A program made the translations under genes and the position numbers. From Perna viridis (lineage: Eukaryota): 64,000 nucleotides of DNA. Shown one piece after another: positions 129 through 63,889 of the stretch; position 1 is the first letter of the stretch; each line of letters starts with the position of its first letter. The stretch is from positions 8,618,001 to 8,682,000 of the forward strand of contig CM074514.1 of the NCBI GenBank assembly GCA_037379345.1. The letters run 5' to 3'. The notes beneath the pieces are model-generated. The model was given only the letters and a program-made list of their open reading frames with translations. It was not told the DNA's origin and did not search any database.

Positions 129-234
129 CAACAGAGACCAAGTAATGGGATATCCCGGATGAGTGCATCGAATGCCCTTCTTCTTCAACATCAATAAAGG
201 AATCCCATGTAACGTAAATATCTGACGAGGATGT
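129..234 (-). CDS. Copy A exon (TSSSDIYVTWDSFIDVEE...SGISHY); B equivalent 60294-60399
   Basis: CAG/GTTAGT; true frame differs from the 96-aa ORF in the track. Confidence 0.85.
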
Positions 235-3200
235 CTGTGACAAAAATGACATCGTTTTAAAATAGAAAATACTTTACGGTTTTTGTTATTAAGACAAGTG
301 TTAGTGCTGATGGGATGCTTTTGAATAGAGTACGACATTGATACGACATTAAACAGATTAAGGCTCAAAGTCTTCTAGAAAGGTCTCATCACTCCAAAGT
401 GTTCATGTTCCCTATCCTACTTTATCATATTTTGATATTTTAAATTAATGACGATTTCATGTCTGGTAAATTCGTGCATTGTGCACTTTTGTGACATCAT
501 TATAATGTATGTTATATGTTATAAGAAATTTAAAATGTACACAGGAACATAATAACAATCTATGACTGGAGCTTCGACATATATTGGAACATTACATTCA
601 CTGTGTCATAAATGAGCATCTAAAATATTAATACTCATATAGACCAAATACCTATCTTTGAACCTTTGTATGGAATCAACTTTTTAATAGAAAAAATGAT
701 ATTTGTGTAATCTTGCGTCAGACTCTGCCTTTGTTTGGTGCCATGGGATTTAATATTAAGCTATTTAATATATTATATTTTCTCTGTTTTTGTTATGTGT
801 TTTAAGTTTCATTATTCGATGTAATGACATCTAATTTATTTATCGCTAGTCCTGCCTGTTTCGGTTAGTATGAATTTTGCTAATAAGCTATTTACCTGAT
901 ATAAAAATTCCTTATTTGTTCCCACCCAAACATTTCCTCCAATTGGAGCTGTAAGGTCTACTACTACACCATCACTGCAGGTCGATACAGCATCTAATAT
1001 TTCTGTCCATTTTTCATGTTGAATTTCCTTTCTTTCAGCATGGACACATACAGCGTATCGTTTTCCATGTATAAGTTCGTGAGAATCATTGAAATGTACA
1101 TTGATATACCTGTGTTCTTAAATTTTAAAGTATAATATTTCGTCAAATCAGATGTTATTGAATTTCACATTTCAGGCGTAAGTTAAATGTAGTAACAATC
1201 TTACAGCTTTATTGGCTTATAGTAAAAATAATTTCGAAGAATTATAGCAAGTAGCAATATTTGGAATAAGGCTTTGAAATGTGAGTGGTTTGTTTTGATA
1301 GTTTCATTAAAATTTGTATATCATTCAGGTCCTTAAATGTGAGGTTTGTTTGTATTTTCACTTTTGTGAAACACCTATCATAATTATATAACATATCCTC
1401 ATTATCAGACATGTCAGTTTTCTAAACCACTCCAATTAACATAAAAAAGTTGTACCTCCATTAACACATTTGGTGATTCGCTTATACCATTATGTTTATA
1501 TGGTCTCGTACAATGCTTATTACATTAATACTTATACAGCCAAAAGAACAAATTTGATGATACTATCAGGAATATTTCTCAATATTGGCTTCATTTGGCT
1601 GTTTCATTTTACCAGAATAATCTAATTTGATAATTTTTCTGGTATCATTTTACTTTTATGACTACATTGATAATAGTTGAACACGCTAGATGATTCCTCT
1701 GGTAGCACTCTATATGTGTAATCTTGATCTGTGATAGTTATGGTAATATTTTACATTTGTGGTCCACAATATGACTCTAATAAAAACAATTTACCTGTAT
1801 GACCACATTTGATGATATCTGGATGAGAGCAAGAATCGGTGATAACAAGATCAGTGTAGTTTCTGTAAAATGTCAAAGCATCATTTGGTCGAACTTCTAA
1901 AACACCCCACTGATATGAATCATGGCGTAAAGATGGCCACACAGCTGATAATACGTTTCTAGTTGGTATATAGTCTACATCTGGTAAATTCCATGGTGTG
2001 TTAGGTTCTAACAAAACATCCTTTAATGATCCTTCTTCTTATTAAAAAAATTATACAATTAAAACTAAGTTTTAAATCAAACAAATCGTTCAATGCCTGG
2101 CATTTGGTTGAGGATTGTTTTATTGGCAATCATATCACATTTCCTACGTTTATATAAATTATCGAATTCATAAAGAAAAATATTCAATGTATTGTTCATT
2201 TTCAATTTTCAACTGGCTTTCACCCAATTTGGCCAATTTTGTTGCTGAATTAGACATATTTCCTTCCTTACAACTATCCTCAAATTGTTTGTGTGTGAGA
2301 TACAGGAAAATGTATGTCATAAAAGAATTCCACGAAAGATATAATTGTCTTCTCCAAAGAATATCTTTAAGTATTTTGTTATGATTTTAATAATATCTTT
2401 GTCATCTCGAATATCCATAAGGATATCTTTAAGTATCGTTTTTATGATTTGAAATGCGCTTTGTACCAACAAATGTGACTTAGAAAAATAAGTGAATAGA
2501 TAATGTCCGGACAGGCTCTTTTTAACTAGTGCATTTGATCAATGGTCAAACACAACCAAACCATCCATCAGCTCAAGGTGGCTTATCTAATTGCATTTTC
2601 CTTTTAGGGTTTTTTTATTTTGTAGTTTTTTTTTTTCCTAAGCCATTTCATCTCATTTCACAATTGTTAATACTGTATACATTTTACTAGAAAAATATAA
2701 ATTCTATTAAATTGTTTCTATTCTTTATCTTACCAAATGTTATACCGCATATAGGTTCATTGACAGAAGTAATATAGCTGACATGAACTTGTCAACACAT
2801 TATAAATGTAAATTAAGCATAAATATTGTACCTACCAGTTCTTCCAATAGCGTCAATTACTGCCCTTGGGATGATCTGGCTATGCTCATCTTTTATGCGA
2901 CATTTCTTTATTTCTGTCTGAACTTCACTCCATACGCTAGCCTTATTGTATCCTCGTAAAGCAATTCTTTTACACTTTGCAAAATCTATATCATCTTCGA
3001 GGATGATGTCAAATTTTACCTAAATACCAAGTTTTGTATTATTTCTTTTTTTGTGGTTGGGTAATTTTTTTTTCAAATGTCAGACATTTCATTTATTTTA
3101 CAGTCGTGTGTTCAATCTTCAATCAAAGCTGGACAGAAATACTATCGAGTGCTTGACACACTCTCTTATCCATTACAATAAAAAAGAAAATACACCGTTG

Positions 3201-6200
3201 ATACAGAAAATGATTTTACAGAAAAGTAAATATTTTGATGACACGGAAATCTAAAATTAGAATAACTCACATGAGTATTATTTATCCTTTGAACTGTTAA
3301 AACCCTTTCCCACTTTTTATAAACACCCGCTTCTCTTGAACCGTCGACAATTGCCCATTCATAAAAGTCGATAGCTTCTTTGGCTTCCGTTCTGTCTTCT
3401 ATATCAGGGTCATACATTTGTTTTGTAAGGACTGTCATCTACAATATAAACTACTAGGACATTGGTTACTTAAAAATAATTAAATCAAACAAAATAAAAC
3501 AAGATACAAAGGTAGATTTGATACGTAAAAGCCGGGTGCTTTAGTGTTAACATAGTTAAAGTGGAATCAGTTCGACCCATGGAAACACTTTCGTCAGGCA
3601 ATCTCTTGATCAATCGTAAGATAAAATAAAAAAAACAACAAATTTGCCTATAACACAAAAGATAATTTTTGTATACGTAGCACAATACTCATTAATTAAA
3701 TTCAGAATACACAAATAGTTCAAACTATCGATAGTGTTTATTATTGTGCGCTTTTTGGAGTTAAAATGGTATATAATACAGAACATACTCCTGAACAATA
3801 TCAAACCACTGTTTCTGTTGAATTGCCAAGTTGTTATATTGATCAGTTTTACCTTCGACTTATCTAGTTGAACTTCGATATAGCCTGTAACTGGGGCAGT
3901 AGGTACTACTGTAACACCATCACTTCTCAATGGAGGAAAGCAAAGATTGTCAGCACATAATTTTATATTAAACCTGTAAGTTCTTCCCGGCTGAAGATCT
4001 AAATTCCCCAGTACTGCTACTTGATGACTTCCAATGTATCCATACTCAATAAAAGTACTCCAGTAGTCTGTGTAAAACAATTTAGGGTATGCATGTTTAT
4101 ATGAACATAGTGTGGGTCATATTATTTCAAGCCAGTTTCAAATTTTCATGTTAATTTTGGTCTGTGTATTAGCAATAAGTCAATAGGTATAAAATGTATG
4201 GTAAATGTATGAGCTATAATGAAACGTCTATTAATACTGCTAAAGAAATTGCTTTACATAAACAAGTTAATTTAAATATAGGGCGCACTATTTTGCAAAT
4301 GTACAACATGTATGAAAGTATGCCATATATTTATTCAATTCAACCATAAACATTGCGTGCATGCATATAGTGTTATTTCCCTAACCTCCAACGGGTGATC
4401 GTATATCTACAGATATCCAGGAACTTCTGATAACATCGTGTAAAGCTGTTGGAATATCCCATTTAGCAAACAACGTAGTCGTTGAGGTTTGGTAATCAAT
4501 ATCTTGTAGACAGTCCTTCAAAATATCCTACAACCAAATTGTCACAATACACATAATATTTAAAACTTTATTACAGTTATTAAAGCATCAAAGCTTTATT
4601 GATTGCTCATTGGTGTAAGCATTGCTGTGTGCAAACCAAACGGGTGCAAACACCAAATCGTGTATCATGAACTTCTGAAGCAGTAATCTTTGTCGGCTTG
4701 AAAGTTAATTAATAAGTCTTAAAATTTGATTATTATACTTACATTTGTATGATGACTTTCATTTAGACTTGTTTCATCTACAATGAAATGACGGGAGATG
4801 TTACCAGTTAAACTAACATTATTCATGGACATTTTTAAATTCATATTGGTATATTGTTTGTATATATTAGTGTGTGTGTGTTTTCGGAGTGGAATACCGT
4901 TACTGTAATTATGTATAATCTATAGTAATTATAAATTTATCTTAATACTATTGACATTAAAATTATAGATAAATCTCGAACCAGAATGGCTGGTTAAATT
5001 TTATTGCACAGAAGTTTAACTGATAAGGTCTCATGGAGCTTTCTAATGGGAATATTAAAAGATGAGTTAATCAATGACTTCTGACATAAAGTTATCTGAT
5101 TAATGTCAATCTGTAAACTATTTATCTCTTGTTCTATACTTTGATACTAAGCATTTTTCAGATTCAACGAGTCGATGCAAACAAAAAAAAACAATATAAT
5201 TTGATGATTTATTAAATAATCAGCAAATTCAAATCAAGAAACAACTTCATCATCTTCCGTACAATGTAAACATAACATGTTTCTACGTACAAGTGCAAAC
5301 GGGACCGTCGTGTATTGAGATTCCTGATAGTTTAGTTCCGGTGTCAACAACCATTACTCCATCAGAATATGACTCAACCGTACCAGCTGAAGTAACGGCT
5401 TTCACAGTGAAATAATATTTCTGAAACATTGTTTTAAATGAATATTAAACAGAACTCTGTTCAGATCACATCTTACAGTTACACGCAGTTCTTGATACCA
5501 TTTTTGAGTTTACACTTATCTTAGTTTGTATGAAATGCATTTAGAATTCAAGTAGAATGAGGTATATCCTACATACGGTCTATAATGAACAAATATATGT
5601 AACACATACAGACATTTATTTTGAAATATTGATGGATCAACTTCTCAGATCTCCCTTTTATTTAAATTTTAGAGCTGTGATCGTTGTTTGTCAAAATGCA
5701 AAGGGAATTGAGACAATAATAAGAAAGAGGTTTTATTGTTATATATTGCATCAAATAAACTCATTCTACATTATCTCCGTATATTGTGTGTATAATCTAT
5801 GAAATATGTTCTGCAAAACTGTTGTATGGTTTGAAATTTAATTTACACCATACATCAGCACAATTCTCGTCCCGTTCAGGATTCCAATTCCCATTCTTAA
5901 ACTCAAATATACTATAGAATAAGTAGATTATGTAACATCCAATAGTATCCTGTGTCAGATACTTTCCACCGAAAAATAATACCAAATTTAATCCGGGGAT
6001 ATTTTATAGTTAAATGTTTTCCATGACTATTAAATTGTTTAAATACCCAACCTTATGATAATAGGATTTAACACACACATGTCTGAAAGGGTTTTCTTTA
6101 GAGATACTATAACATTTTTTAAAAAAATGTCGGGCTTGGTTTTCTGTTGGGTAAACATAGTTCACAGTGTTGTAAGTGTTAATGATTTGGAAAGTTTTTT

Positions 6201-9200
6201 GATATGACATATTATCCAGGAAGATTTTAAATATTAATTTTCATCAAGGATGTTTTTCGATATTAATAAGTATCCTGGATGATGTTTCATGGGATATTTA
6301 CAAATAGTTTTTCATTTAGGATACTATTTACTTGATATTATCCATTTTATCATGAGTATGAGCTCTTCATATGTGTATTTTATTCAGGATTTTATTTAAT
6401 ACTGTAGTATGAAATAATATCCTGTCTTCAATTGGGAATACCTCTAGCTTTTTCATAACAAAATATAGTAATTAAAATATCATTGTTCAAGTAGTGGAAA
6501 CAATTTGATAGGTGTGGAAACTTTTTCATAGCGAAATAATATCCTTCGGAAAAACAATTAATGTGAAAGAATTTCTACAGGATAAGATTTCATCCAGATA
6601 GTATTATGTCTTACAATTATATCTATTCAAGAACTATTCATGTAAAGATACCTGAAAGGAGACGAGTTGCAGGTTTGTAAATATAATTCGATTGATAGAA
6701 TCATCAATGTTGTCTCTTTTGGCGAAATCACAGTCTCCACTTGTTGTTCCTAAACAGACTATGTACATAACAGGTAGATGAGGATGACGAAAACCTGTCC
6801 ATTGCACAGCCAAGGTATTAGATTCTTCCGAAAAATCGACATCTATTACATCCTGTAAGATAAATCCAATGTTCTAACTGGGTTATGCATCTGATCAGAT
6901 GTATTTACCTACTGCATGAACATTTATACATTTCATTTTATGTTCGATCAGTAAAATGAAGTAAACTTACAGAAGAAATAGAAAGAGTAATAATCAAAGC
7001 AAATAAGATGCGACCTAAAAAAATAAATAGATACACATGCCAAAGAACACGAAATGAATTGAATAATACGTCCAAAGAAACACAAGTAAATAAGGTACCC
7101 GGACAACTAGAGGCTCTTTAGGGCCTAAATCGCTCACCTTGCTCGATAAGCAACATTCATTTTTTGTAAAATCGGCCATATTTTTTCTTCAATAAAATTT
7201 CCGAACGCTCATACCTAAGAAACAATCATATCAGTTTTCATTAAATTCTGTCCACTAAGGAGGAGCACATCTTTAAAGTAATTAAATTAAAAATCGCAAA
7301 AATATGTCGAAGTAGGGCAATATTTTTAACGTTTGCTCAACAGATCTACATGAAAATATGACCACAGATAGATATCACCATGCAAAACATTTATTTTTGT
7401 CAGAATTTGGCTAAACTTAACAATTTTGGAAAAATACGTGAAAAACTCCTATCTTAGATCAATATTCTTTTTTTTTTAGTAACGGCTGTCATGTTTTTCG
7501 ACAGCTGAAAAATACCCACATCTTTTCTTATCTAGAAACATCAATCGAAACGCTAATAGGAAGTCATGTCAAGGGTAAACGAAAGAAGAAAGGAAAATAT
7601 GACAGGGTGAACAAACAAGTTCTCATTTTGGAAGATTGATACACCATAGTTCATGATAAATATTATAAAACTTCTGAAGTGATAACTTCACAGATGAAGC
7701 AGCATACTCCTCTTTCCTGAAGCCTTGTTGTTTGAAGTCTAGCACGGTACAAAGGGTCCACGTAGCGTCGGTAAGCTCTGGCATAACGTATGGTATGTGA
7801 TATGAAAACTCCATACACAGGTGCTAAGGGATGTTGCCACAGATGAAAGGGAAATTGACAATACTGTATGAAAAGTTATCACATTTGTTACATTTATGGT
7901 TCAGTACAGTGAAACATACCTTAACATTTTTGTTGTTGACATCGTTTGGATTAATATCATAAACAACACCCACTGAAGGCACCTGGACATCATGTATATA
8001 ACCCTCAGATATCTTTGACGTGCTTAACCCTGCTAGGTTTGTTACTTTAATTGTCACATAATACATGTCATGAGCGTGTAACTTAGAATCTAACACAGAT
8101 AGATCGATAGCTGTACATTCTGGTGGAAGTGTAGGCGTACATTTAGAGTTATAATTCAATGGTTGGTATCCTGCAACTTCTGTGCGGTCTTTAGTTTGTC
8201 CTTAAGTTAGATATAATTAGATAATTTATTTCATTGATCCATGATTAATAGAAAAAAATATGTACATTAAAATCTAAGCAAATCTGAAAAAAATAAAAAT
8301 AGACCAATGCGGCAAACAGGATAGAATAAAATTACGTAAAACTTAAGTAAAGATAAACAATACTTCACACATCTAGAGTTGGCTTTTAAATAGCCCCTGG
8401 AACTGCTAATATACCATTTTAGTGAATAAGGCAACACACTATACTTTAATGGGCATGGGATCCGGATTTGGGATTTGAGCCAAAGATTCTGCGGGTATAA
8501 TTTACAGTAATGTGTCCAAATCTTCCACTTAAACTCGGGCAAATATAATAGCTTCATTATCTTGTTACAGTTTACTCAAATTTAACACATTATACAGAAT
8601 GGGTATTGTTTTTCCTGACAATGTACTTTTGATCCGAGTAGCAATTAAAAAAAGCTTAGTAATATTTACCGATTGCAAATTTAAAATTGAGGAGATAATG
8701 GTCCTCGGTGTCTTGAAAGGCTCCTTTTGGCCAATTTGCAATAAGTATTCCGTCCTCGTATTTGACATCTATTGTTGATCCATGATATGTTGGAGGTGTC
8801 ACATCTATTATAATCGGTCCAGTGCTCTATAACATATGGACGATTACCGTAATCTGAATACAAATTGTTTGTAATTCCTTATCCATTTTATTTTGTAATA
8901 ATTAATATGTTTCCGGCCTAAAAATGTTATACAGTTGCATTACAATAGGTTAAAAACATATACAGGAGTTCATCGAATGTACTGAACATAGCTTCTTAAA
9001 ATATTATCAGTTGTAGATCTCACATTAATCCCTGAAAGACACAGAAATATCCATAGAATGTTTGGCACAATTGTTAATTATACTTTAAATCATTTATTTT
9101 GTACCTGATATCCGGACACTCCACTTTTACTGATGCTTTTTATGACAATATAAAACAAAGTTCCCTCTGCTAGGTCTGGATTATCTACCCTGATGTGACG

Positions 9201-24170: not shown

Positions 24171-25971
24171 TTTTGTCCTACAAAAATAAAAACATTTTTA
24201 AGCCAGGAGAGACAATACATGTGGGTCAAAACTTTATATCACAATATACAGACAAGTATTTTTAACAGTAGGTGGACCATGATTTACTTTTGTGTTAACT
24301 GTAATATACATGAATGAGAAATAAGCTCGTAAAAGCATTGGTGTTTAGATGTCTAAAGGCAAATTTGTTTGTAATAAATGTAGCAACGAATTCTGTTCCC
24401 TAATGATATCTGCCAAAGCTTGAAACACTGTTTTCATATCAAACGCAAATAAAGATTTAACTGTCTCCTGATTCTAACTTTTGAATGTAAAAAGGCTCTG
24501 TATAATTATCTAATCAAATGATTTAGAATAGCCCTGTCTGTTTTCTCTTACCGGAAAAAAATATCTTAAATACATGTATATGTACAATGTACACATAGCA
24601 TACATGTCCCTTTATAAATTCGATATTCTATATGCATTTTAACGCATTTTTGTGTGTACAAAATCCTGTCTCTTAAGATTTTTGTATATAATGTAAAATT
24701 ACATTTTTTTCGTATTTAGTATACACTTTTTTTAACACACACCAAAAAATAAAACTTTTATAAACCCTGACCCATTATTATATAAAAGCTGTCTTTGCCG
24801 CACCTTTTACGAGGTGCATGGATGAACATCTAAATTCTCAACGGTCATGTGTACATGTCTTCATGTAGTTTTAGGATTTGTTATGAAAGGTATAATCTGA
24901 TATTGGTTCCAAGCTCCTGTCGTGGTATATGTAGTCAGAAGTTCAGCTTTTTGTCTTTTTTTTTTTAATATTCATGCAGATTTTAGCGTCTTATTTTGTG
25001 TTAACAAAGTTTTATTTTATATCATTCAGCTGCCTCAAATGATACATTTCATTGATTTCTTTCCAAAGTTTTGTTATCCGCCTCCTGAAAATCTTGAAAA
25101 ATAAAGGCAGGGTTGTGAACTTGGAGGGGTTGGAACAATGCATTTTACGTTGTAATGTTATATATGCATGGCTTGGCTGCGAATTATTTGAGGTTTCATG
25201 GTAAGAATATCTACGTGACATTTAAACAAAAATCGTTTTGTCAACCTGATTTTAAGATATGACAAGTTTTTTGCATTGGACTGGAAATATTATCATTTGC
25301 ATAGGTAAGCGTTAATCTTCAGAAACTCAAGAAAGAAGACACCCCAGGCACCCCAACCCCGCTGTAAATATTATACGAAAGAGGAAGATTTGACGTAGCG
25401 ACATATCCATTTGCTATAGAACTATACTAGAATTCGTGACAGATTATTTTCATACATTTTAACATCAGATTGCTATACGTCTTTAAAAAAAATACTATAA
25501 TATTGATCCATGATTTCCTCTTTTCTCGCCATCTTTGTGACTAATGAATACCGATAATTCCGAAAGCGGCAGGTTCTTAGCTCCCGCCGTGAATCAGACA
25601 AGACCGTAGGAGATAACGAAATGTATGATAAAATAATGAACACCCATATAGATACATTTATTTCAATCTTTCAGGACTACTTACTTACCCAGTTTTAAAA
25701 ATGTATCAAATCTATCAGAGTGAACCCTTACATTATTTCAACTTGATAATGTTTGGAGTTTGTTATTCTCCTGGTATATGTAACACAAGAAATGCAGATA
25801 GATACTCTATAATATGACAGATCTTTTCATTCTTCGTTGCCGAGAAAAATTTATAGGAAATATAATTGAATGATCCTATATTGTTGAAACTCATTGCCGA
25901 CAATACCAGTACTTCACCAAGTATAACAGTGCTGATTGGTGAAGTTACAATGATAGTGGCAATTATCATAT

Positions 25972-26278
25972 AAACTGATTTATTCAACGGGTCATAGTTT
26001 TCCTTTCCTCGTTTGTCTACCACGGACTTGACTTTTTATGAGCAACTCGGCGGGTGTTTCTAGAAAAGCAGAGGACAATTACCCTACCGGTGCACCTAGT
26101 CCATGCTCCCAGTTTTTAGTGGAGTCCGAGTTGCTCATTTGCTTTTGTTACTTTGTATGTATGATTTTAGTTACTTTATGTTCTTTGTTGTGTATGTTTG
26201 TTTTCCATGTCGGGTCTTTGTCCCTGGATTACATTCTTTTGATTATCGCTATAACCTTGGTTCCCTTGGTTACTCTTT
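25972..26278 (+). mobile_element. PLE 3' fragment
   Basis: Homologous to the 17135-17440 copy; followed tail-to-tail by a diverged minus-strand fragment at ~26330-26480. Confidence 0.82.
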
Positions 26279-28251: not shown

Positions 28252-28350
28252 CAAATCACCCTTGACTTCATTCAAACAGGTTTTGATAGGTTCTTCTCGG
28301 TTTAATTTAACGGCCTATTTTCCGAACACAGGTATTTATCTTCTTCACAA
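28252..28350 (-). other. Candidate non-coding first exon of copy A
   Basis: GTAAGT donor at 28246-28251; the ATG exon has its own acceptor, so an upstream exon is expected; 5' limit is a guess. Confidence 0.3.
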
Positions 28351-28534
28351 CGCAAGTGCGTAAAATAAGAGAAATATGAAGTATTCACTTCAGAATTTTA
28401 AATCCATACAATTTAAGCTATTTAAAAAAAAATGCTATCATAACTTTTGTATTGAATAAAATGATACACACGCTCTTAACTGTCTAAATATTTTAAACTT
28501 CCTTATTTATTAAGTTAAAGGATAAAGATTATTT

Positions 28535-31500
28535 TTTTTTAACTTTTTATTTTTTTTATTCAATAAGATACATATATACATAACAGATAGTTTAAACTAC
28601 ATGAAGAACATCACATGTTGTTTACTTAAACCGCATCATTCTGTACATACAAACAACCAGCTTAATAATGAGATATATGCTTTATCCTATTGGGTTTATT
28701 AAAAATACAGTAAATTAGGTGAAAAAAGGAATAATTTGATCTGAAAAAAAAGGAAAAAAAAGTCTGGCTGAATGTTTACAACATTGGGAGCATTAGGTTG
28801 CATTCAAAAATCTATAAGAGTTCCAAATTTTTTCAAAATTTTTCACACGTTTGTTTTTCGCAGCTATCATTTTTTCAATATTATACATATACTTCATTTT
28901 TTCTAACATTCCTTGCACATTTAATGGTTTATTATAACACTTCATACTGTAAATATAATGTTTCATCCAAAGAATAATATTATTTTGTGGATCACCTTTA
29001 CAACATTGTTTAATATTACCAAACAAAAATATGATTTTAGTGAATGCTATGCTTATACCATTATGAAGGAGCCATTGATCAATTTCTTCAATAAAATCCT
29101 GTACGTGTTCACATTCCCATAACAAATGTTCAATAGTTTCTATTCCTGAATTACAGAAGAAACAAAATGGAGAGGAGGCATTGGCAACTATATTGATAAA
29201 TTTGTTGGTTGTCAAAATCCTCTGATTAATTCTGTACTGGAGCCAATGCAGTTTTTGTGTTTTGTGTAACGACAAATGGAAGTTTATTAAAAACTTTCCA
29301 ATTCTCAATATCTACATTTAAAATTGTGCTCCACTTGGTGTTCCCTGTAGACGTACAATCATTTCTATTTAAAATACAATATATATCTCTTGAGCCCTTC
29401 TGACTCTTTAATATAGTTTTCACATGTGATGGAATGAAAGGAGATGCTAGTTTGTAGCTTTCTTTTGTAAACTGCTTACATATCTTTGATGTCAGAGACA
29501 TAATACTATTGTATTTCATTATATTCAAATTTACATAAAAAATATTTTGTAATTCGTCGTGTTTCAAAAAAGAACCATCTTCTCCAACCAAATCATTAAC
29601 ATAACGAATACCTCCATCAAGCCAGTTCTTATAAAGAATTGGTCGTTGTTCAACTTTAAACAAATTATTCATCCAAAGAGGACTGGCTAAAAAATATTCC
29701 CATTTTTTATCTTTCTGTCTCTCCGTTACCATTTCCCATGACAACAGAACATCTCGCCAAAAATTATTTTTAATATTTTCTCTTAAATGAGATATATATG
29801 CTGATCCACAGGTGAACAATTTTTCTTTGTCTACCTGTGATAAGAAAATATTTTGCCAATTTCCTTCATTTCTAAAAAGTCTCCTTATCCATGTACATTT
29901 CATGGCTTGAATGAAAGCATTTACATTGATCATCTTAAGGCTTCCTTCTTCATAGCATTTTTGTAATACATCTTTCTTAACTTTATGAACAGGTGAATTC
30001 CACACAAATGTATAAAAAATGTCGTTTATATTTTTCACCGTATCATCCCTTGGGTTTGGAAGTGACATTATAAAATGAATCAAAATTGGTAACAAAAGTG
30101 TTTTAACAACTGTTATTCTACCAATTACTGTGATATTGCGTTTTGACCACTGGTTTATTATACTTTTGATCTTTCTGATACTTTTATCATAATTTTGTTT
30201 TATCATCTTATCCAGGTCGACCTCAAAATTAACACCTAATAATTTGAAAGATGTAACTCCCCAAGAAAGATTTTTCTCTCTACATAAAACCTCCTTAGAA
30301 TACTTTTTGCTCCCAATCCAAACAACTTGAGTTTTTGAAAAGTTGATGTTAAGTCCCGAAATCTGGCCAAACCAATCAAGTTCATGTAATGCCTGGTTCA
30401 AGGACTCTTCTGAACCATCTAAAAGTAAAGATGTATCGTCTGCAAATTGGGACAATTTATGTTCAACCTGGATGACTTTGATTCCCTTTATATCATTCTT
30501 TCTAATTTTCACACTCAAAATTTCAGCACATAAGATAAATAAGTACGGTGACAAGGGTCCCCTTGTCTACAGCCCCGTTCAATTAAGAAAAACTCTGAAA
30601 GATTCCCACCCTGAATAATAGCGGAGTTTATGTTATTGTATAAAACTTCTGTCCATTTTATAATAGAATCCCCAAAGTTAAAGAACTTTAAAACATTTTT
30701 CAAAAATCTCCATGAAATGGAATCAAAAGCCTTTTCAAAATCGATTAATAATAAAAGGCCAGGTATATCATTTTCTTCACTATATTGCATAATGTCATAA
30801 ATAAGTCTAATATTCTCCCCAATATATCTTCCACTGATAAATCCAGTCTGATCAGTATGTATAAGATTACTCAAAACAGTCTTAAATCTCATAGCTAAAG
30901 CACCAGAACAAATCTTATATACTGTGTTCAATAAAGATATGGGTCTCCAATTCTTTAAAAAATGTCTTGGTTTATTTCCCTTAGGTAGACAAGTAATAAT
31001 GCCCTGTTTTTGTGTGACAGATAATTCTCCCTTTTGGTACCCTGCATTTAATGATCTAACAACAAAATATTTGAAATCCTTCCAAAAAAACTTAAAGAAG
31101 TCAGTAGAAAACCCATCAGAACCTGGCGTTTTATTATTTTTCATACGTTTTAATGCCAGACCAGCTTCATTAACAGTAATAATACCTTCTAAACTGTCTT
31201 TTTGATCATTTGTTAACTTTGTAAAATTTACACCATCTAAACCTTGATTAATATCATCATATACATTGACATTGTCATTGTCTTTTTTCTTATAAAGTGT
31301 TTCATAAAATTCCTTAACCTGGTTTAAAATCTCTTTCTGATCTGTAACTACCTCCCCATTATCTTTTTCAACTTTAGGAATGATTTTACTCGTAAAGTTC
31401 TTAGATTCTAGACTACAGAAATAACTTGTTGGCTTTTCCCCTTCCTCTATCCATTGTACTCTAGATCTAACCATTTTACCCTGCAATCTCTCCTTTCTGA

Positions 31501-33307: not shown

Positions 33308-33370
<63 letters not shown>

Positions 33371-54200: not shown

Positions 54201-57200
54201 ACTCCATCAGACTCTGTCTCTGTACATATCTTAGCTCCGTTACAAACTATCAGTTTGAAGTAGTAGGTTCCTCCGTCTTGTAACTCTAAATCAGTCAGCG
54301 TATATTCTCTGAGTATTCCATTTATCTAAAATAATTTGACATATAGCATATTGTGTTATCCATTGAATCGTCTCATTATTTATCTAAATTACCAACGACA
54401 ATGATAATTTTGTTTTGTATTCATGTCAATTACGGGAATGGCTGTAGTTGAATACCGTTTTAGTTATTTTTATATTGTATAACATTATTACAGCAAATGT
54501 ACTAAGGAAAACAATTACCATCACTGACGATGAATTGAACTCTCCATTTTGGTGTGATACAAACGATATATATTGCCGGAGTATAGATGACTGTTTATCT
54601 TCAACATCCCATTGGAATCTAATTGCCGATCTCAAGACAAATGTGTCCTCAGTTAATGAGCCAATATCACGTGATAACTTTGGTGGCTCCAAAACATCTG
54701 GGGGTGACACATCAACAAGAAATCCATTTGATGTAGATTCTGTGTATAAACCTGAGGTCATAAATATGAAGCTAAGAGAAGGTTAACTTTTCTGAAAACA
54801 TAAACTGAATTAAATTTACATTACAACATTAAGCTTACCTTAGTTTTCTTTGGTTTATTAATTTTAAACATAAAAAGCATTACAGTAGAGACACATATTT
54901 ACTGAAAGAACAATCAGGAGAACCAAGCTTCAAAATCAAATAATTATACTCCAAGACTGGAAAAACACACAAAACAAAGGATATAAAACAACCAAAATAA
55001 CACACACAATGAAATAAAATTTATTGAGCAGCCTGGACTCCATATAAAACTTGGAGCACGCAAAAGGTGCACCGATAAGGTAAAAGTTCTCTGCTCTTCT
55101 ACCGATTTGTTCACGTCCGCGGTTCACGAGCGATGTTCCTTTCTATAGGTCAGATCTTATGATAGTTAGTCAGCATCATAAGACAGAAGGATTGGTCAGT
55201 GAGTAGCGGAGCACAATTTATTCCCATCAGAATGCCGACAGCTTTCTGAAAATCACGTCCAACCCACTAGACAAAATGTTGTAGAAAGAAAATTCCAGGA
55301 TTTATACAACACCTTCGGTATATTTAAAAGATGATATTTTTACAAAAAATGAGGAATTACGTTCCAAGTACTATGTTTTTGTATCTAGGTTTATCGTCTT
55401 ATTTTCTTTTCTTTTTTGGAGTAACAACGATGCCTCATGTTTCTGAGTTTCCTTTTCAACCGCGCATGCTATTATATTCTGAAAATAATCTAGCATTTAG
55501 GGTTTCCAGAAGATCTTTCGAATCTATTAGAATTTTCACTGAATCGATTCCTCTACGGAAACCTACAAAAGGGGCACCAAATCCATGTCTTTACGATGAA
55601 AGAGTAATCGAGTGAACAGACAAGACATGGAAAACAAACACACACAACAAAGAACATAAATTAACAAAAGTAACACATATCAAGTAACAAAATTAAAGGA
55701 GCAACTAAGACTCCACTAAAATCTGGTAGCATGGACCAGGTGCACCGATATGGTAAGTGTCCTCTGCTTTTCTAGAAAAAAACCCGCCGAATTGCTTATA
55801 AAAAGTCAAGTTCAGGGTAGACGAAAGAGGAAAGGAAAACTATGACAAATTGGTTCCCATGGAACCGATGGATATACCGTAACGATCCACAATGATCAAA
55901 GGCCCTTTCATAGTCTATGTATTTTTTCTTCTTCTAACTTGTCTTACAGGTCAAATGCTAGTCTCATCAGTGCAAGCTAAACCCATGACCTTAAAAGCAC
56001 TGATAGCCTTTCAGTCTGCCAGAAAGTTAATATCTATACTTTGTTTTCGTACTGATAATAGTTTGAAAAATAAATCCTAATTCATTTGAAATTGTAGAAG
56101 GCATTATGATTTTTTTTTTTAAATATATCAATAAAATAAACTACGTCATCTTACAGGTTACATTGCCTCATATAACATCCTCCTTTATCCCTACCTTTCA
56201 GAAATTCAAACTTTAATTCAATTTTAAAAGCGAAATAAGAAATAAATCTTCTAATAGATTTTGTCATCGAATCAAGACAAAATTGGTAGCTGCAAGTACA
56301 TGACATTTTGATAAAAACTTTCGTTAGTTTTACTGTTTTTGTTTTGAGGTGTTCTGTATTATGGTATGCATAGATGATTTTATCAATAAATCAAGAAGTA
56401 CCTGCTTTGTTGTAAACACGGACGGTGCTATAAATACGTCTTCCAGGTGGTAGAGGTGCTGGCAATTCTGTTATAATCACCATATCTGTTTCACTGATAA
56501 TATGTGGGGGGTAAATATCAGCTGATCCCGGAGACGTACCAACCCGAACAACAATGTAATCTATATCAGACTGTGCATCATTAAATCCAAACCATTTAAT
56601 TGAAATGTAATTCCTGGAAAGATATTAAGACATAAATAACTAAATAAGACATGAAATACGGCTTGTTTGAAATTACATCTGTGAAACATAGTTCAAAATA
56701 CATCTGATCAAAAATGAAATGATATTAGCCAAAACAACGAAGGTAGTCACATATATAACACATTATGAAATATATCTTGTACTCTGAATAAAATTGAATA
56801 GACGCTTATTTACCTAACTGACAGAAATTCGATATCATAATCAGCAGAGCCATCTTGAACAACACCTGGTACAGGGGGGCTGTTGTCAATGGTTACACCG
56901 TCTGATGTCACAGATGTACACATATTTCCAGTGTTACATGCTGTTACTGTAGAATAATATGTACGACCAGCCTCCAGGGCGACATTTGACCAGGTAAAAT
57001 CTGAACAAAAATATATTGAAAATCAATTGTAAATCTGTGCTCACAATAACCCTTGGCTTTTATCACACTTTTATATGAGGTTACTATCTAACAAGTATCT
57101 TTCTTAACTCACGAAGAACGATTGCATTCACGTGTGTGTTCTTCAGTTGCATTTGGTCGCATTTGAAATATCAAAGTCAATGAGTTGATGCATTCCAACC

Positions 57201-60200
57201 CTATCTGTGATAATGAATTCTTTTTTTGTTTAATTTTGGTCGTGGCTTGACTTTCAAGATCAATGTATTCACATATCCAAAGTCAATATGAGATGCAATT
57301 GCGGGATTGAAATACTTATATGTATGAGCACCTACAATTTGTTCATTAATGATATCATGACATCCAGAACAAGTTCCGATATAAACGCGGTAGCACTTTA
57401 TAACTGAATGGGGATCATAAAATCCTTCCCAGTAAACGGATAGTTGACTCATATCTGTTTGGTAATCAATGTCTTTAGAGTGAGGCGAGACTGCGTCTGA
57501 TTTCCCATCATACACATGTCCGGCAACAGGGGGTGAAATGTCGTAAATGTTAGCTAGGGATGATTTACTGGTGGAAAGTCCGGCCATGTTGTATGCCTAA
57601 ACACAACAAAAAATTGTCATGTAATATTCAAACAAGTAGAAAGTTCTCTGTTTTACATCAATCAACATAACAGCATTCGTTACGTATATGAAATGGACTT
57701 AGTGTTGATGTAATGTCATATGATAATCATGCATTATGATTTATACGATAATTAATTATCTTCCGCAGTTTTACATTGAGGATACAAATTGATTAGCACA
57801 TGAATATTTCAGATGTGTATATTTATATTCTTTATATGTTTATTCATATAAAACAATATTTCGTTTGGCATTGGTTCTAACATGAAACCGTTGATGTGAA
57901 CAAAAAAAGTAATGATTGTTTAATTCAATTCGCAGTTGACATACTATTGTTTATGAATCATGAATTACCTTCACAGTAACAAAATAAGGGTGGCCTTCTA
58001 TCATTTGATGATTATGGTCTGGTTTCAAGTTGCCACATTCCTGGCCGGTTCTAGAAAAATTTATTTGATCATCCTGACCGGATAATGAACCTAATCCAAC
58101 CATGTAATGGTCGATACCACTTTCAATATCAAAGAATATATTTTTCCAGCTACAAAAAAGGAGGAAATGAATTTCATATGAAAAAGAAACAACTAGGTAG
58201 ACAAGTAGTATTAAGCCTTTTGTAAGTAATTTTAACTGGTATATTTCAAACAATGAATACATAAGTGCAATGTTATTCGGATCATCTTTAAGTGACTGTA
58301 GAACTCAATTCTTGTAAAATCTCAAACACATTTCATATATTTATTAATAATTTTAATAATGAATTCAAACTACCAATCAGTATAATTATTTCGGGTGACT
58401 TTCAATAACAATAATAAATTAAACGCACGTACTGAAAACTTTGATATCGGGTGTGAAAAGGTATTTTAGTGTACTTAACTAGTGCTCCAGCTAAGAATCA
58501 TGCGAAATGTGATTCATGGTTGGAAATCTTAATATTTTTTTCATTTTTAATATTTGGTTTAAAACGTTATACTGACCAGAGGTTAAAACGTGTTTTTTTT
58601 TTTCATATAATCCTTGTTCATAAGAGATATCAATTATTTAAATGCACTGAAGAATTCCAAATAAACGGAGATAAACCTGTAAATAACACTAAAATACAGT
58701 AGAAATCATTTAATTTTTTGCGTGAATTATCTCCTAAGAGCAGAAAGATTGGAATGATCATTTTACAGTTCAACATATAGACCTATAAAGCCACTTAATA
58801 ACAGAAATAGAAATAAGTTATTTACCAAATAAAATCTACTTTGTTTACATAAAACATGTGTTCGGATTGATGCAAAAGCACCACGGGCAACGTAAATTAT
58901 AATTCTTATACAGTTAATGTGTTCAGCAATATTTCTGAACTGTGATCTGTTCAGAACAATTACTATTTCGATTTTAATTTCTTCGTGTAAATATGGCTTT
59001 ATTTGATAAGATGTATACCACTTTTCTGAATGACCTTTGTATATCAAATAGAGAGCGGATCTTTTCAAAAGTATCATTTGGCTATCTTATGGAACCAAAA
59101 TAGATTTGAACACTCTTTAATATGGAACTTTTCAGAAAATCTATGACAAAAAATGCACAGTTTTCCGCACGTTCTTGTACCTTATGAAGTCACGTTTTAA
59201 TGTATGTATATATAATTTGTATTGAGTAGAAAATTCATATATTGTCCCATGTAACAAAATACGTCTGAACTTATTATTTCTAAGTAATTACAATCAGGCC
59301 ATTCTACTTCAATTATATTTACCAAATCTCTATCTGGCTTAAATTAGTTAAAATTCTGCCACCAATATATATAGATTCTGATGAAACTACTGGGGGTGTT
59401 GTATCTATTGTTACGGGATTAGCATGAACTTTTGTCGTTCGGTTGATGAAATCAACACCTGATGATAAAATTCAACAACATTTAATACAATTGTATGGTT
59501 ATTAAACTAATAAATATTTACGTAAAAACTACTGATCAGAAATAAAGAAGTTTAGACAGAGATGTACATTTTTCATTGCGATAACTTTAAAACAGGGCAG
59601 CGGAAATAGTTTTATGTTATATTTGTTTTCTTTTAATAGTCAGTTAAATTAAACTTACCTGATACAGAAACGAAATATGTATGTCCTTCTTGCAAGGTTA
59701 GGCCGTGAAAAGACACGTGATTGGTAACGCCAACATTTCGTTCGTCAATAACATCAACTCCATCTTTAACAGAACCTTCAAACAAGATAAAATTATATTA
59801 TCAATAATCTAATAAATACAATGTTGAAATTTGTATTGTAATTTGAATATCGAACAAATCATGCATATGTGCGTTTCTTTTTTTCATTTATCGTTTTTGT
59901 TTTGTTGGGTTTTCTTTTGGAGGTTAGCTTTTTAGTTCTAAAATGAAATGCAATTAACACTGAAATACTGAATTACATAATAAAGTTAAAAAAATGACAT
60001 TAAGAAATAGTTAATAAACCCAACACAATATTTCGTCTTCGTCTGTGTCGTTTCCCTTATACATGTTTACTGTAAAATCAACTATGCAAACAAAACATGA
60101 ACAAAACAAAAACAAACACAGAGACAACAATAAAATGTGTGTACGCTTATAAAAGCTTACTGATAAGATTTATTTGTAAAAATACCAATCATATTTATTG

Positions 60201-63200
60201 CAAATTTCGATATGTTGTACACGAGTTTCAAGGAGTAAATATTCAATGTAATTTTTGCTTATTATCTTTATTTCTTTGTAAAACGATACTAACCAACAGA
60301 GACCAAGTAATGGGATATCCCGGATGAGTGCATCGAATGCCTTTCTTCTTCAACATCAATAAAGGAATCCCATGTAACGTAAATATCTGACGAGGATGTC
60401 TGAGACAAAAATGACATTGTTTTAAAATCGAAAATACTTTACGGTTTTTGTTATTAAGACAAGTGTTAGTGCTGATGGGATGCTTTTGAATAGAGTACGA
60501 CATTGATACGACATTAAACAGATTAAGGCTCAAAGTCTTCTAGAAAGATCTTATCACTCCAAAGTGTTCATGTTCCCTGTCCTATTTTATCTTTGGCCGC
60601 CGAACATATTTTGATATTTTAAATTAATGACGATTTCATGTCTGGTAAATTCGTGCATTGTGCACTTGTGTGACATCATTGTAATGTATGTTATATGTTA
60701 TAAGAAATTTAAAATGTAAACAGGAACATAATAACAATCTATGACTGGAGTTTCGACATATATTGGAACATTACATTCACTGTGTCATAAATGAGCATCT
60801 AAAATATTAATACTCATATAGACCAAATACCTATCTTTGAAACTTTGTATGGAATCAACTTTTTACTAGAAAACATGATATTTGTGTAATCTTCCGTCAG
60901 ACTCTGCCTTTGTTTGGTGCCGTGGGATTTAATATTAAGCTATTTAATATATTATATTTTTTCTATGTTTTTGTTATGTGTTTTAAGTTTAATTATTCGA
61001 TGTAATGACATCTAATTTATTTACCGCTAGTCTCTGCCTGTTTTTGGTAAGTATGAATTTTGCTAATAAGCTATTTACCTGATATAAAAATTCCTTATTT
61101 GTTCCCACCCAGACATTTCCTCCAATTGGAGCTGTAAGGTCTACTACTACACCATCACTGGAGGTCGATACAGCATCTAATATTTCTGTCCATTTTTCAT
61201 GTTGAATGTCCTTTCTTTCAGCATGGACACATACAGCGTATCGTTTTCCATGTATAAGTTCGTGAGAATCATTGAAATGTACATTGATATATCTGTGTTC
61301 TTAAATTTTAAAGTATAATATTCCGTCAAATCAGATGTTATTGAATTTCACATTTCAGGCGTAAGTTAAATATATTAACAATCTTACAGCTTTATTGGTT
61401 TATAGTAAAAATAATTTCGAAGAATTATAGCAAGTAGCAATATTTGGAATAAGGCTTTGAAATGTGAGCGGTTTGTTTTGATAGTTTCATTAAAATTTGT
61501 ATATCATTCAGGTCCTTGAATATGAGGTTTGTTTGTATTTTCACTTTTGTGAAACACCTATCATAATTATACCACATATCCTTATTATCAGACATGTCAG
61601 TTTTCTAAACCACTCCAATTAACATATAAAAAAGTTGTACCTCTATTAACACATTTGGTGATTCGCTTATACCATTATGTTTATATGATCTCGTACAATG
61701 CTTATTACATTAATACTTATACAGCCAAAAGAACAAATTTGATGATACTATCAGGAATATTTCTCAATATTGGCCTCATTTGGCTGTTTCATTTTACCAA
61801 ATAATCTAATTTGATAATATTTCTGGTATCATTTTACTTTTATGACTACATTGATAATAGTTGAACACGCTAGATGATTCCTCTGGTAGCACTCTATATG
61901 TGTAATCTTGATCTGTGATAGTTATGGTAATATTTTACATTTGTGGTCCACAATATGACTCTAATAAAAACAATTTACCTGTATGACCACATTTGATGAT
62001 ATCTGGATGAGAGCAAGAATCGGTGATAACAAGATCAGTGTAGTTTCTGTAAAATGTCAAAGCATCATTTGGTCGAACTTCTAAAACACCCCACTGATAT
62101 GAATCGTGGCGTAAAGATGGCCACACAGCTGATAATACGTTTCTAGTTGGTATATAGTCTACATCTGGTAAATTCCATGATGTGTTAGGTTCTAACAAAA
62201 CATCCTTTAATGATCCTTCTTCTTTTAAAAAAAAATATACAATTAAAACTAAGTTTTAAATCAAACAAATCGTTCAATGCCTGGCATTTGGTTGAAGATT
62301 GTTTTATTTGCAATCATATCACATTTCCTACGTTTATATACAGGCTCTTTTTAACTAATGCATTTGATCAATGGTCAAACACAACCAAACCATCCATCAG
62401 CTCAAGGTGGCTTATCTAATTGCATTTTCCTTTTAGGGTTTTTTTATTTTGTAGTTTTTTTCCCAAGCCATTTCATCTCATTTGACAATTGTTAATACTG
62501 TATACATTTTACTAGAAAAATATAAATTCAATAAATTGTTTCTATACTTTATCTTACCAAATATTATACCGCATATAGGTTCATTGACAGAAGTAATATA
62601 GCTGACATGAACTTGTCAACACATTATAAATGTAAATTAAGCATAAATATTGTACCTACCAGTTCTTCCAATAGCGTCAATTACTGCCCTTGGGATGATC
62701 TGGCTATGCTCATCTTTTATGCGACATTTCTTTATTTCTGTCTGAACTTCACTCCATACGCTAGCCTTATTGTATCCTCGTAAAGCAATTCTTTTACACT
62801 TTGCAAAATCTATATCATCTTCGAGGATGATGTCAAATTTTACCTAAATACCAAGTTTTGTATTATTTCTTTTTTTGTAGTTGGGTAATTTTTTTTCAAA
62901 TGTCAGACATTTCATTTATTTTACAGTCGTGTGTTCAATCTTCAATCAAAGCTGGACAGAAATACTATCGAGTGCTTGACACACTCTCTTATCCATTACA
63001 ATAAAAAAGAAAATACACCGTTGATACAGAAAATGATTTTACAGAAAAGTAAATATTTTGATGACACGGAAATCTAAAATTAGAATAACTCACATGAGTA
63101 TTATTTATCCTTTGAACTGTTAAAACCCTTTCCCACTTTTTATAAACACCCGCTTCTCTTGAACCGTCGACAATTGTCCATTCATAAAAGTCGATAGCTT

Positions 63201-63889
63201 CTTTGGCTTCCGTTCTGTCTTCTATATCAGGGTCATACATTTGTTTTGTAAGGACTGTCATCTACAATATAAACTACTAGGACATTGTTTACTTAAAAAT
63301 AATTAAATCAAACAAAATAAAACAAGATACAAAGGTAGATTTGATACGTAAAAGCCGGGTGCTTTAGTGTTAACATAGTTTAAGTGGAATCAGTTCGATC
63401 CATGGAAACACTTTCGTCAGGCAATCTCTTGATCAATCGTAAGATAAAATAAAAAAACAACAAATTTGCCTATAACACAAAAGATAATTTTTGTATACGT
63501 AGCACAATACTCATTAATTAAATTCAGAATACACAAATAGTTCAAACTATCGATAGTGTTTATTATTGTGCGCTTTTTGGAGTTAAAATGGTATATAATA
63601 CAGAACATACTCCTGAACAATATCAAACCACTGTTTCTGTTGAATTGCCAAGTTGTTATATTGATCAGTTTTACCTTCGACTTATCTAGTTGAACTTCGA
63701 TATAGCCTGTAACTGGGGCAGTAGGTACTACTGTAACACCATCACTTCTCAATGGAGGAAAGCAAAGATTGTCAGCACATAATTTTATATTAAACCTGTA
63801 AGTTCTTCCCGGCTGAAGATCTAAATTCCCCAGTACTGCTACTTGATGACTTCCAATGTATCCATACTCAATAAAAGTACCCCAGTAGT
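41980..63889 (-). CDS. Copy B (3' part; begins past right edge) of the same gene; 29 exons visible; two splice lesions, possibly pseudogenised
   Basis: Exons 63675-63889, 63094-63261, 62660-62843, 61979-62221, 61079-61299, 60294-60399, 59659-59775, 59323-59458, 57969-58149, 57320-57596, 56814-57000, 56402-56613, 54519-54751, 54172-54325, 53741-53919, 52314-52457, 51515-51683, 50781-50919, 50359-50480, 49957-50096, 48984-49131, 48363-48566, 47890-48093, 46945-47688, 46359-46571, 45876-45971, 43929-44257, 42943-43144, 41980-42257 (TAA stop); phases consistent. Confidence 0.87.
42943..43144 (-). CDS. Copy B penultimate exon
   Basis: AAG/GTTAGT. Confidence 0.8.
43929..44257 (-). CDS. Copy B exon (LQPLGNEL...SSDGVT...WTGFTD...)
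   Basis: CAG/GTAAAT. Confidence 0.85.
45876..45971 (-). CDS. Copy B exon (VDIDGQ...DPESGI...WSI)
   Basis: CAG/GTAAGT. Confidence 0.85.
46359..46571 (-). CDS. Copy B exon (NTEGSAELQDF...IDKTPP...DGT)
   Basis: TAG/GTATGT. Confidence 0.87.
46945..47688 (-). CDS. Copy B largest exon, with galactose-binding/CBM/DUF642-like domain (NNPSFE...GFLVDDIRI)
   Basis: 236-aa ORF; CAG/GTAAGC; NxSFE...YRLSF...W...DDV/I pattern typical of CBM-like jelly rolls (pattern recognition, no HMM run). Confidence 0.85.
47890..48093 (-). CDS. Copy B exon (DMDYQN...WHGFTDMESGI...)
   Basis: CAG/GTCAGT. Confidence 0.87.
48363..48566 (-). CDS. Copy B exon (TDLH...SSDGVMVD...VYDGI)
   Basis: AAG/GTAAGA. Confidence 0.85.
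48984..49131 (-). CDS. Copy B exon (VSEK...DVDF...LSTYPE)
   Basis: AAG/GTAACT. Confidence 0.82.
49471..49820 (-). mobile_element. PLE 3' fragment (diverged)
   Basis: QKFYGRRHELVDRYGVSICTM plus 3' UTR. Confidence 0.8.
49957..50096 (-). CDS. Copy B exon (QELKE...FKSNGITV...)
   Basis: CAG/GTAGGT. Confidence 0.82.
50359..50480 (-). CDS. Copy B exon (YEWSVG...)
   Basis: AAG/GTTGGA. Confidence 0.8.
50781..50919 (-). CDS. Copy B exon (ENTKITVDD...LAAKW...)
   Basis: TAG/GTATTT. Confidence 0.8.
51515..51683 (-). CDS. Copy B Cys-rich exon (LVRRCDALYCLGHCVC...C...C)
   Basis: TAG/GTCAGT. Confidence 0.82.
52314..52457 (-). CDS. Copy B exon (TPGLPAEF...TVWATNN) lacking an in-phase AG acceptor
   Basis: Open frame joins the next exon (VGLRS); GTAATT donor; acceptor reads ...cattgta|ACA. 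Confidence 0.7.
53741..53919 (-). CDS. Copy B exon (MFAIGT...WVGFSDLHTGI...)
   Basis: AAG/GTATGA. Confidence 0.85.
54172..54325 (-). CDS. Copy B exon (INGILREY...SDGVLIDTTPP)
   Basis: TAG/GTAAAC. Confidence 0.85.
54519..54751 (-). CDS. Copy B exon (LYTESTSNGFLVDVSPP...)
   Basis: CAG/GTAATT. Confidence 0.85.
54905..55100 (-). mobile_element. PLE 3' UTR fragment (diverged)
   Basis: ggtgcaccgataaggtaa...ctctgct motif. Confidence 0.65.
55599..55890 (-). mobile_element. PLE 3' fragment
   Basis: Homologous to ~17200-17470. Confidence 0.8.
56402..56613 (-). CDS. Copy B exon (NYISIKWFGFNDAQS...YNKA)
   Basis: CAG/GTACTT. Confidence 0.85.
56814..57000 (-). CDS. Copy B exon (FTWSNV...SDGVTIDNSPPVPGVVQDG)
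   Basis: CAG/GTAAAT. Confidence 0.85.
57320..57596 (-). CDS. Copy B exon (AYNMAGLS...DIDYQ...WEGFYDPHS...) with non-canonical ATAAGT donor
   Basis: TAG acceptor; phase requires a donor at 57319, which reads ATAAGT. Confidence 0.8.
57969..58149 (-). CDS. Copy B exon (WKNIFFDIESGI...)
   Basis: TAG/GTAATT. Confidence 0.85.
59323..59458 (-). CDS. Copy B exon (VDFINR...IDTTPP...)
   Basis: CAG/GTAAAT. Confidence 0.85.
59659..59775 (-). CDS. Copy B exon (SVKDGVDV...LQEGHTYF)
   Basis: AAG/GTAAGT. Confidence 0.85.

Follow-up and report, generated by a model that had tools for sequence, protein, structure and literature searches.

A recently amplified gene for a giant, putatively secreted FN3-array protein with a cysteine-rich head and a CBM-type module in Perna viridis

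The 64,000-nt stretch of the Perna viridis genome analyzed here (C4:8618001-8682000, hereafter "the window"; G+C content 32%) is filled by a multi-exon gene on the minus strand, of which two head-to-tail copies are partly included, copy A with its 5' two-thirds and copy B, the next one, with its 3' two-thirds. The gene product is a giant FN3-array protein, predicted to be secreted, that is not of the EMI type by profile test, nor a tenascin, usherin or hyalin. We consider it likely that this is a recently amplified gene for a secreted FN3-type rod carrying a cysteine-rich head and a CBM-type module, most probably a component of a matrix, mucus or coat. An initial annotation of the window had joined the two copies into a complete protein of ~3330 residues; the gene is real, but the protein so assembled is a chimera of two paralogues.

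Two gene copies within a recently amplified tandem array

Copy A starts at 24170 and runs out of the window at 129, and copy B enters at 63889 and reaches its stop at 41980 (both on the minus strand), with intergenic DNA separating the two. That the copies overlap by six exons, as first annotated, was borne out both by the DNA, in which 1-4180 and 60166-64000 are 96.8-98.7% identical, introns included, and by independent exon chaining. The six shared exons (4067-3789, ~3431-3196, 3019-2836, 2037-1755, 1109-896 and 234-129 in copy A; the counterpart of 4067-129 in copy B is 60294-63889) are 97-99% identical, with zero to four mismatches per exon. Self-comparison with a 30-kb flank added on each side of the window revealed a tandem segmental duplication of ~60 kb, in which -30000..28319 aligns with 27509..88387 at 95-99% identity (window scale, flanks included). 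A 355-bp intron stretch of copy A, 2156-2511, has no counterpart in copy B.

Searches of the genome (a 723-Mb assembly in 46 contigs) placed the 4.2-kb segment shared by the two copies at four positions on C4, at 97-100% identity, and at one on C1; the C4 positions belong to a head-to-tail array of at least four copies whose spacing is uneven (110, 60 and 80 kb). The exon encoding the CBM-type module gave 19 genome matches, comprising five at 97-100% identity, one at 88%, 11 at 39-43% (on C8 and C6), and one stop-bearing locus found twice (63% and 74%), so that at least 17 open copies of this exon are present. The two tandem copies therefore belong to a larger family that has expanded recently. 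The stop-bearing locus, C4:8458379-8459107, with six in-frame stops in the CBM exon (63% identity), is a pseudogene located at the array's edge.

Gene model and orthologues

A hidden Markov model (HMM) of length 3196, built from 18 orthologues, was run against the minus-strand open reading frame (ORF) pieces of copy A. It matched 45 successive pieces in strictly ascending order, covering positions 57-3194 of 3196, an arrangement that excludes chance. For this and all other searches we used single exons or database orthologues, and the joined gene model was used to check the reading frame, count stops and repeats, and compute hydropathy.

Exons were chained by dynamic programming from homology evidence, codon bias and splice scores. 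Stop-free chains were obtained for each copy, with 50-54 exons and 10.3-10.7 kb (flanks included); this is of the same order as the 52 exons in a single 9993-nt ORF initially annotated, the exact figures of which were neither reproduced nor refuted. Copy A chains without a stop from its start at 24170 to a stop at ~-17707 (window scale, flank included), with several junctions not fixed. Exon edges fell exactly at the limits drawn initially, one exon ending at 129 and another starting at 63889, and the motifs noted at that stage all lie on the minus strand (CGFLGW at 22969, CCSGY at 21019, and W.GF.D..SG, N.AGL and SDGV scattered). The chains over-extend several exons into introns (e.g., 54751-54456) and call for two to four weak bridging mini-exons; three of these, near 14976-14844, 9850-9727 and 4777-4743 in copy A, match gaps in the HMM coordinates. 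At junction 57273/57000 there is no canonical in-phase donor compatible with orthologue length. The true coding length is probably nearer to 9993 nt and to the 3,381-3,573 residues of the full-length orthologue models.

The orthologues come from bivalve and gastropod molluscs, which supply the closest named relatives, and also from a nemertean, a brittle star, amphioxus and a sponge. They include LOC143056054 of Mytilus galloprovincialis, hypothetical proteins of Sinanodonta and Potamilus, LOTGIDRAFT_165393 of Lottia, LOC135497317 of Lineus, LOC118405866/LOC118415516 of Branchiostoma, and proteins of Haliotis asinina, Amphiura filiformis and Oscarella lobularis; no vertebrate or ecdysozoan member was present among the orthologue names looked up. 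Exon pieces were 40-62% identical to Mytilus P0076 and to the unionid proteins P0019 and P0028, and per-exon BLAST matches were collinear with P0019, P0028, P0031 (amphioxus) and P0073 (Lottia), the head exons aligning to P0031 residues 41-204. Shared with the orthologues are full-length collinearity, the signal peptide and cysteine-rich head, the Cys modules, the FN3-like array, the CBM-type module and the C-terminal end. The differences lie in sequence, at 35-62% identity per exon, and in the recent tandem burst in this genome, and one orthologue adds SRCR, VWA or TSP1 domains. The named orthologues that we checked are labeled only "uncharacterized", "Fibronectin type-III domain-containing" or "EGF-like domain-containing", and no paper on the family turned up when the literature was searched by architecture terms and by the names of the orthologues from Lottia, Branchiostoma and Mytilus, consistent with the initial failure to assign the protein to a named, characterized family.

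Transcription of the first exons

Transcription was examined using contigs of four public RNA runs from four studies (X1, X4, X9 and X10), aligned to the 6 kb of 18160-24159, the exon 1 ATG lying 11 nt beyond this stretch. Spliced contigs in both X4 and X10 contained the joints 22932/21038, 20983/18940 and 18767/18314, and a spliced contig of X4 only contained the joint 24103/23009. All four joints read CT..AC on the plus strand (i.e., GT..AG on the minus strand) and coincide exactly with the predicted boundaries of exons 1-5. Junction mapping by RNA-seq, which had been suggested as a check on the annotation, thus confirmed the first four junctions to the nucleotide in two studies. One contig match ends at the predicted donor at 18168 and continues with 14 letters that match nothing in the tested stretch.

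Cysteine-rich N-terminus

Exon 1 (24103-24170, minus strand; 22 codons and 2 bases) begins with the start codon and encodes a signal-peptide-like N-terminus, in which a charged n-region and an 11-residue hydrophobic core are followed by a perfect donor (AAA/GTAAGT). It was the best-scoring combination of ATG, hydrophobic stretch and donor in 23010-28600, and the N-termini of the orthologues are likewise hydrophobic. The signal peptide proposed initially is supported by this hydropathy heuristic, rather than by SignalP.

The head motif, C..CGFLGW..C..CCSGY..C, is divided between exon 2 (22932-23009; C..CGFLGW..C, aligning to P0031 residues 41-61) and exon 3 (20983-21038; CCSGY....C, with one leading and one trailing base), whose junction is among those confirmed by RNA. 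The identification of this head as an EMI domain did not hold. The Pfam EMI profile (PF07546) had no match on exon 2 at E values up to 1, on the full N-termini of the orthologues P0073, P0038 and P0051 at E up to 10, or on P0031 at E up to 0.05, and it was absent among the 25 families tallied over 15 orthologues; only the cysteine motif (CGW + CCxG[YFW]...C) resembles EMI. The EMI domain comprises ~75 residues. The head described here has ~46, with loops much shorter than those of EMI. With the profile unmatched, the multimerization proposed for the protein on the strength of an EMI domain is likewise unsupported.

Exons 4 (18767-18940; furin/EGF-like, aligning to P0031 residues 81-121), 5 (18168-18314) and 6 (17580-17693; EGF-like) are cysteine-rich and symmetric, each of phase 1-1. 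Exon 6 matches HMM positions 57-90 (E 2.4e-7) and is 51-65% identical to P0073, P0038 and P0031. The EGF-like Cys modules of the initial annotation are seen as such cysteine-rich phase-1 exons, but their profile matches are sub-threshold: exon 4 matched Pfam Furin-like_2 with an E value of 0.007, below the cut-off, and exon 6 matched JAG1-like_EGF2 with an E value of 0.023.

Exon 5 is the last before an assembly gap (17991-18123), which lies inside intron 5 of copy A (18167-17694). Exon 5 ends in the donor GAA/GTAAGT with one trailing base, exon 6 has a good acceptor and two leading bases, and the two join in frame across the gap (phase 1). They align to residues 128-169 and 172-204 of amphioxus P0031 and to residues 136-176 and 183-219 of Lottia P0073. 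Since the exons are adjacent in two orthologues, there is no room for a hidden exon or module in the gap. By coordinates, the flanks of the gap are collinear with the sister unit, in which the counterpart measures ~107 nt.

FN3-like repeat array

The initial description of an FN3/Ig array is supported both by profile matches and by fold. Pfam fn3 was found in 13 of 15 orthologues (best E 2.7e-16). The orthologues also match several immunoglobulin (Ig)-like Pfam families, mostly as sums of weak stretches, from which it follows that Pfam lacks a model for this repeat subtype. For Mytilus P0076, the closest orthologue (46-62% identical to exons of the window), the AlphaFold model is an all-beta string of beta-sandwiches with a mean predicted local distance difference test (pLDDT) score of 78.5; its best PDB matches are titin/MyBP-C, contactin-2, the bacterial grappling-hook protein GhpA, gp130 and LAR FN3 domains 1-4 (E 1e-12 to 1e-21). 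A phmmer search of P0076 against PDB sequences found no match. The repeat unit has 100-130 residues with its own motifs (TPP..G.V.DG, W.GF.D..SGI, N.AGL and SDGV), and a locally iterated repeat profile detected ~17 units in the copy A chain. With one repeat exon as query, 711 proteins were found at E up to 0.001, and a large share of these have 2,000-7,000 residues. A word-index protein search with a 258-residue exon, subject to a length filter, returned two fragments. Membership of the main repeat in the hyalin/HYR group was rejected, no HYR match appearing in any scan.

In copy A, exons 7 to ~28 (129-15607, minus strand) encode the N-terminal HYR/Ig-like region and the first FN3-like units, equivalent to HMM positions 88-1593. 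The exons that were stable in both chains are 15607-15344, 14749-14530, 14046-13897, 13542-13194, 12637-12343, 12084-11958, 11550-11326, 10900-10700, 10289-10018, 9323-9105, 8826-8670, 8200-7920, 6852-6652, 5420-5291 and 4527-4386, followed by the six shared with copy B. The central FN3-like array is contained in ~19 exons of copy B (47890-59775, minus strand), whose homologues in copy A correspond to HMM positions 1593-2579. Stable exons here are 59775-59659, 59458-59323, 58149-57969, 57596-57273, 57000-56814, 56613-56402, 54751-54456, 54325-54172, 53919-53741, 52421-52278, 51683-51515, 50919-50781, 50522-50359, 50096-49926, 49148-48984, 48566-48363 and 48093-47890; the place of a further minus-strand piece, 54102-54001, in the chain is not fixed.

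CBM-type module and C-terminus

A large single exon of copy B, the 766-nt 47688-46923 (minus strand), encodes the end of an FN3-like unit, a complete extra domain (model residues ~38-207) and the start of the next unit. The AlphaFold model of window positions 46940-47686, made with 13 rows of paralogues and relatives, has a core pLDDT of 70-89 and is a CBM-type beta-sandwich. Foldseek matched it to CBM4-2, CBM16, CBM61, CBM22 and the CBM-like domain of the Cry1A protoxin, and structure comparison gave Z scores of 12.6-13.1 with root-mean-square deviations of 2.1-2.4 Å over 121-133 aligned residues. The CBM-like insert noted initially is therefore supported by the beta-jelly-roll fold of the model (Z ~13 to CBM4/16/61). 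Fourteen paralogues share a conserved N-P-S-F-E motif and a paired DD. The exon itself had no Pfam match; among 15 orthologues, DUF642 was found in three, with amphioxus proteins just short of the cut-off of 27 bits (the best, P0031, has 26.5 bits and E 6.5e-6), and CBM_4_9 in one (E 0.042). Judging from its fold, the module may bind glycans.

The C-terminal exons of copy B are 46642-46359, 45971-45876, 44257-43929, 43162-42943 and 42281-41980 (minus strand), the last of which ends at the stop codon 41982-41980 without a hydrophobic tail. In copy A, the homologues of these exons reach HMM position 3194 of 3196. Aligned with P0058, P0127, P0054 and P0045, the last exon extends to 1-19 residues from their ends, and other hydrophobic windows occur only in those exon parts that the chains over-extend into introns. 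A downstream transmembrane exon was rejected, as the orthologues end where the gene stops. Both the hydropathy heuristics and the end shared with orthologues agree with the initial statement that there is no transmembrane or glycosylphosphatidylinositol tail, and these heuristics suggest that the protein is secreted.

Relation to known proteins

Like emilins, multimerins and MEGF/Nimrod proteins, the protein is predicted to be secreted and has an N-terminal C..CGW..C..CCxGY..C motif followed by candidate EGF-like modules; unlike them, it has no Pfam EMI match, a shorter head, neither gC1q nor coiled coil, and an FN3-like body. The profile test led us to reject an emilin/MEGF-type EMI protein. 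Long tandem arrays of FN3-type sandwiches are shared with tenascins, usherin, contactins and LAR-type phosphatases, and in tenascin and usherin EGF-type modules precede the FN3 array. However, a fibrinogen globe, a laminin domain, a transmembrane segment and a phosphatase domain are all absent from the present protein, and a tenascin or usherin identity was rejected because the defining terminal domains of those proteins are missing. With CBM4/16/22/61 and DUF642 the module shares a beta-jelly-roll fold, but the identity is 10-19%, and here an animal FN3 array surrounds the module.

The best whole-protein matches of a single repeat exon were giant bacterial proteins from metagenome-assembled genomes (P0003, P0004, P0005 and P0007), with 17-24 matched stretches at 36-41% identity. 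The same repeat subtype is present in MFN8035841.1 of Acidimicrobiia and MBI2571446.1 of Schekmanbacteria, with 14-24 stretches at 36-41% identity to one exon of the window (whole-protein E 1e-90 to 1e-107). The bacterial proteins score highly mainly because each contains many repeats; P0003-P0005 have only FN3/Ig-type Pfam families, with no DUF642 or CBM, and show no collinear orthology. GhpA of Aureispira, a rod-like string of Ig/FN3-type domains, is structurally similar.

Proposed nature of the protein and alternative explanations

We propose a giant extracellular protein of ~3,300-3,500 residues, with a cleavable signal peptide and no membrane anchor, in which the cysteine-rich head would be followed by three EGF/furin-like phase-1 exons, an HYR/Ig-like region, at least ~17 detectable FN3-type units, a CBM-type jelly-roll near the C-terminus and then a few more units. 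The FN3-type units would form a long rod, anchored or cross-linked via the head, and the CBM-type module would hold polysaccharide; we infer both the rod shape and any oligomerization. Such a protein would most probably serve a structural or adhesive function in an extracellular matrix, mucus or coat, and its strict collinearity from sponge to amphioxus favors a conserved structural role. The work provides a gene model backed by evidence, and a domain map at the level of folds, for a giant family left "uncharacterized" across many marine invertebrate phyla. As a large and recently amplified family, it would be worth looking for in the proteomes of mucus, byssus, shell matrix or egg coats, and both the animal-embedded CBM-type module and the repeat subtype common with bacteria deserve a Pfam model and a binding test. 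We regard this as a well-supported annotation that does not overturn current understanding and describes no new kind of system. A more far-reaching reading, which we advance only tentatively and consider rather doubtful, is that the gene belongs to an ancient animal matrix family, ranging from sponge to amphioxus and never studied, that combines an FN3-like subtype otherwise of giant bacterial surface proteins with a prokaryote-style CBM and has just been amplified in tandem here. If true, the family would be a major, so far unrecognized constituent of the mucus, coats or adhesive matrices of marine invertebrates, possibly reflecting ancient domain exchange with bacteria.

Several observations weigh against our interpretation as a matrix, mucus or coat protein gene. 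The gene model retains its unfixed junctions and weak bridging exons, and its chains differ between the copies. Two indels distinguish copy B from copy A outside the window, at ~69.4-70.5 kb (window scale): one of 1 nt in the counterpart of exon 9323-9105 and one of 18 nt in the counterpart of exon 10289-10018. The exon chain of copy B must switch splice sites there, and, judged by the 1-nt indel, this copy may be damaged in its part 5' to the window. RNA support covers exons 1-5 and comes from two of the four runs, X1 and X9 having yielded thin intronic pieces and no spliced contigs. At 22974 and 18214, moreover, the RNA contigs match neither copy A nor copy B, indicating that the transcripts derive from a further near-identical copy or an allele. 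What is demonstrated is thus expression of the near-identical family rather than of one of the copies in the window. Pfam scans likewise gave little, as the cysteine-rich exons reached no threshold and 10 exons of the window (E up to 0.1) returned nothing meaningful, the only hits being a chance match to MCR and a weak one to Furin-like_2, because the repeat units are split by introns.

As the family was amplified recently, its product may have a role in immune recognition. Specifically, it could be a fast-evolving pattern-recognition or agglutinating factor, whose CBM-type module binds microbial glycans and whose amplification reflects an arms race. The five near-identical copies and ~11 older paralogues, a CBM fold typical of bacterial glycan binders, and the SRCR domain in one orthologue would all suit such a factor, as would the codon differences between copies A and B (54 non-synonymous, 41 synonymous). 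However, the ratio of these differences is under the ~3:1 expected without constraint, and strict 1:1 collinearity over ~3,200 positions from sponge to amphioxus is unlike most rapidly diversifying immune receptors. We therefore consider an immune factor unlikely.

We also asked whether the copies could be an artefact of assembly, either (i) two haplotypes laid out in tandem, or (ii) a scaffold join at the gap that fuses different copies, in which case the genes would in reality be fewer or arranged otherwise. Divergence between the copies is only 1-3%, which is within the range of heterozygosity of marine invertebrates; the gap at 17991-18123 is inside copy A; and near-identical repeats let a scaffolder join the wrong units, so that the join at the gap may link parts of two different near-identical units. 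Against this, the sequence to the right of the gap alone (18124-88387) contains both ends of the 60-kb period, with 18124-28319 matching 78173-88387, and two haplotypes are insufficient to account for five copies at 97-100% (four on C4 and one on C1). The flanks of the gap are consecutive relative to the sister unit rather than overlapping, on which ground an origin of the duplication by haplotig overlap was rejected, and a retrotransposon (described later) is present in one unit only. We judge an artefact to be quite improbable.

Finally, a decaying pseudogene array whose open frame is an artefact of free splice-site choice could be imagined from the weak bridging exons, the differing chains, the 1-nt indel of copy B and the six-stop relative at C4:8458379, but we find it very improbable in view of the 45 ordered, stop-free ORF pieces over ~3,100 HMM positions, the spliced transcripts, the canonical splice dinucleotides preserved in the sister copy at almost every exon, and the divergence of the exons (1.0% between copies A and B), which is about half that of the whole unit (1.2-4.7% over aligned blocks) and fits moderate constraint, not decay.

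Other features of the window

Between the gene copies, at 28534-32762 on the minus strand, is a non-LTR (long terminal repeat) retrotransposon (long interspersed nuclear element, LINE) with an APE-type endonuclease at 32173-32604 and a reverse transcriptase spread over two ORFs, 30518-31933 and 29229-30566. This LINE is missing from the sister 60-kb unit, indicating that it was inserted after the duplication.

Interspersed repeats are present in introns and intergenic DNA at 21360-21960, 23360-23560, 17139-17473, 25972-26283, 12793-12987, 33380-33656, 49540-49820 and 55599-55890. An Rfam scan of the window, these repeats included, found no family. Two of the repeats had a summed RNA contig depth of ~7,000-44,000 in all four runs, and the repeats probably represent an abundant, transcribed element resembling a short interspersed nuclear element (SINE).

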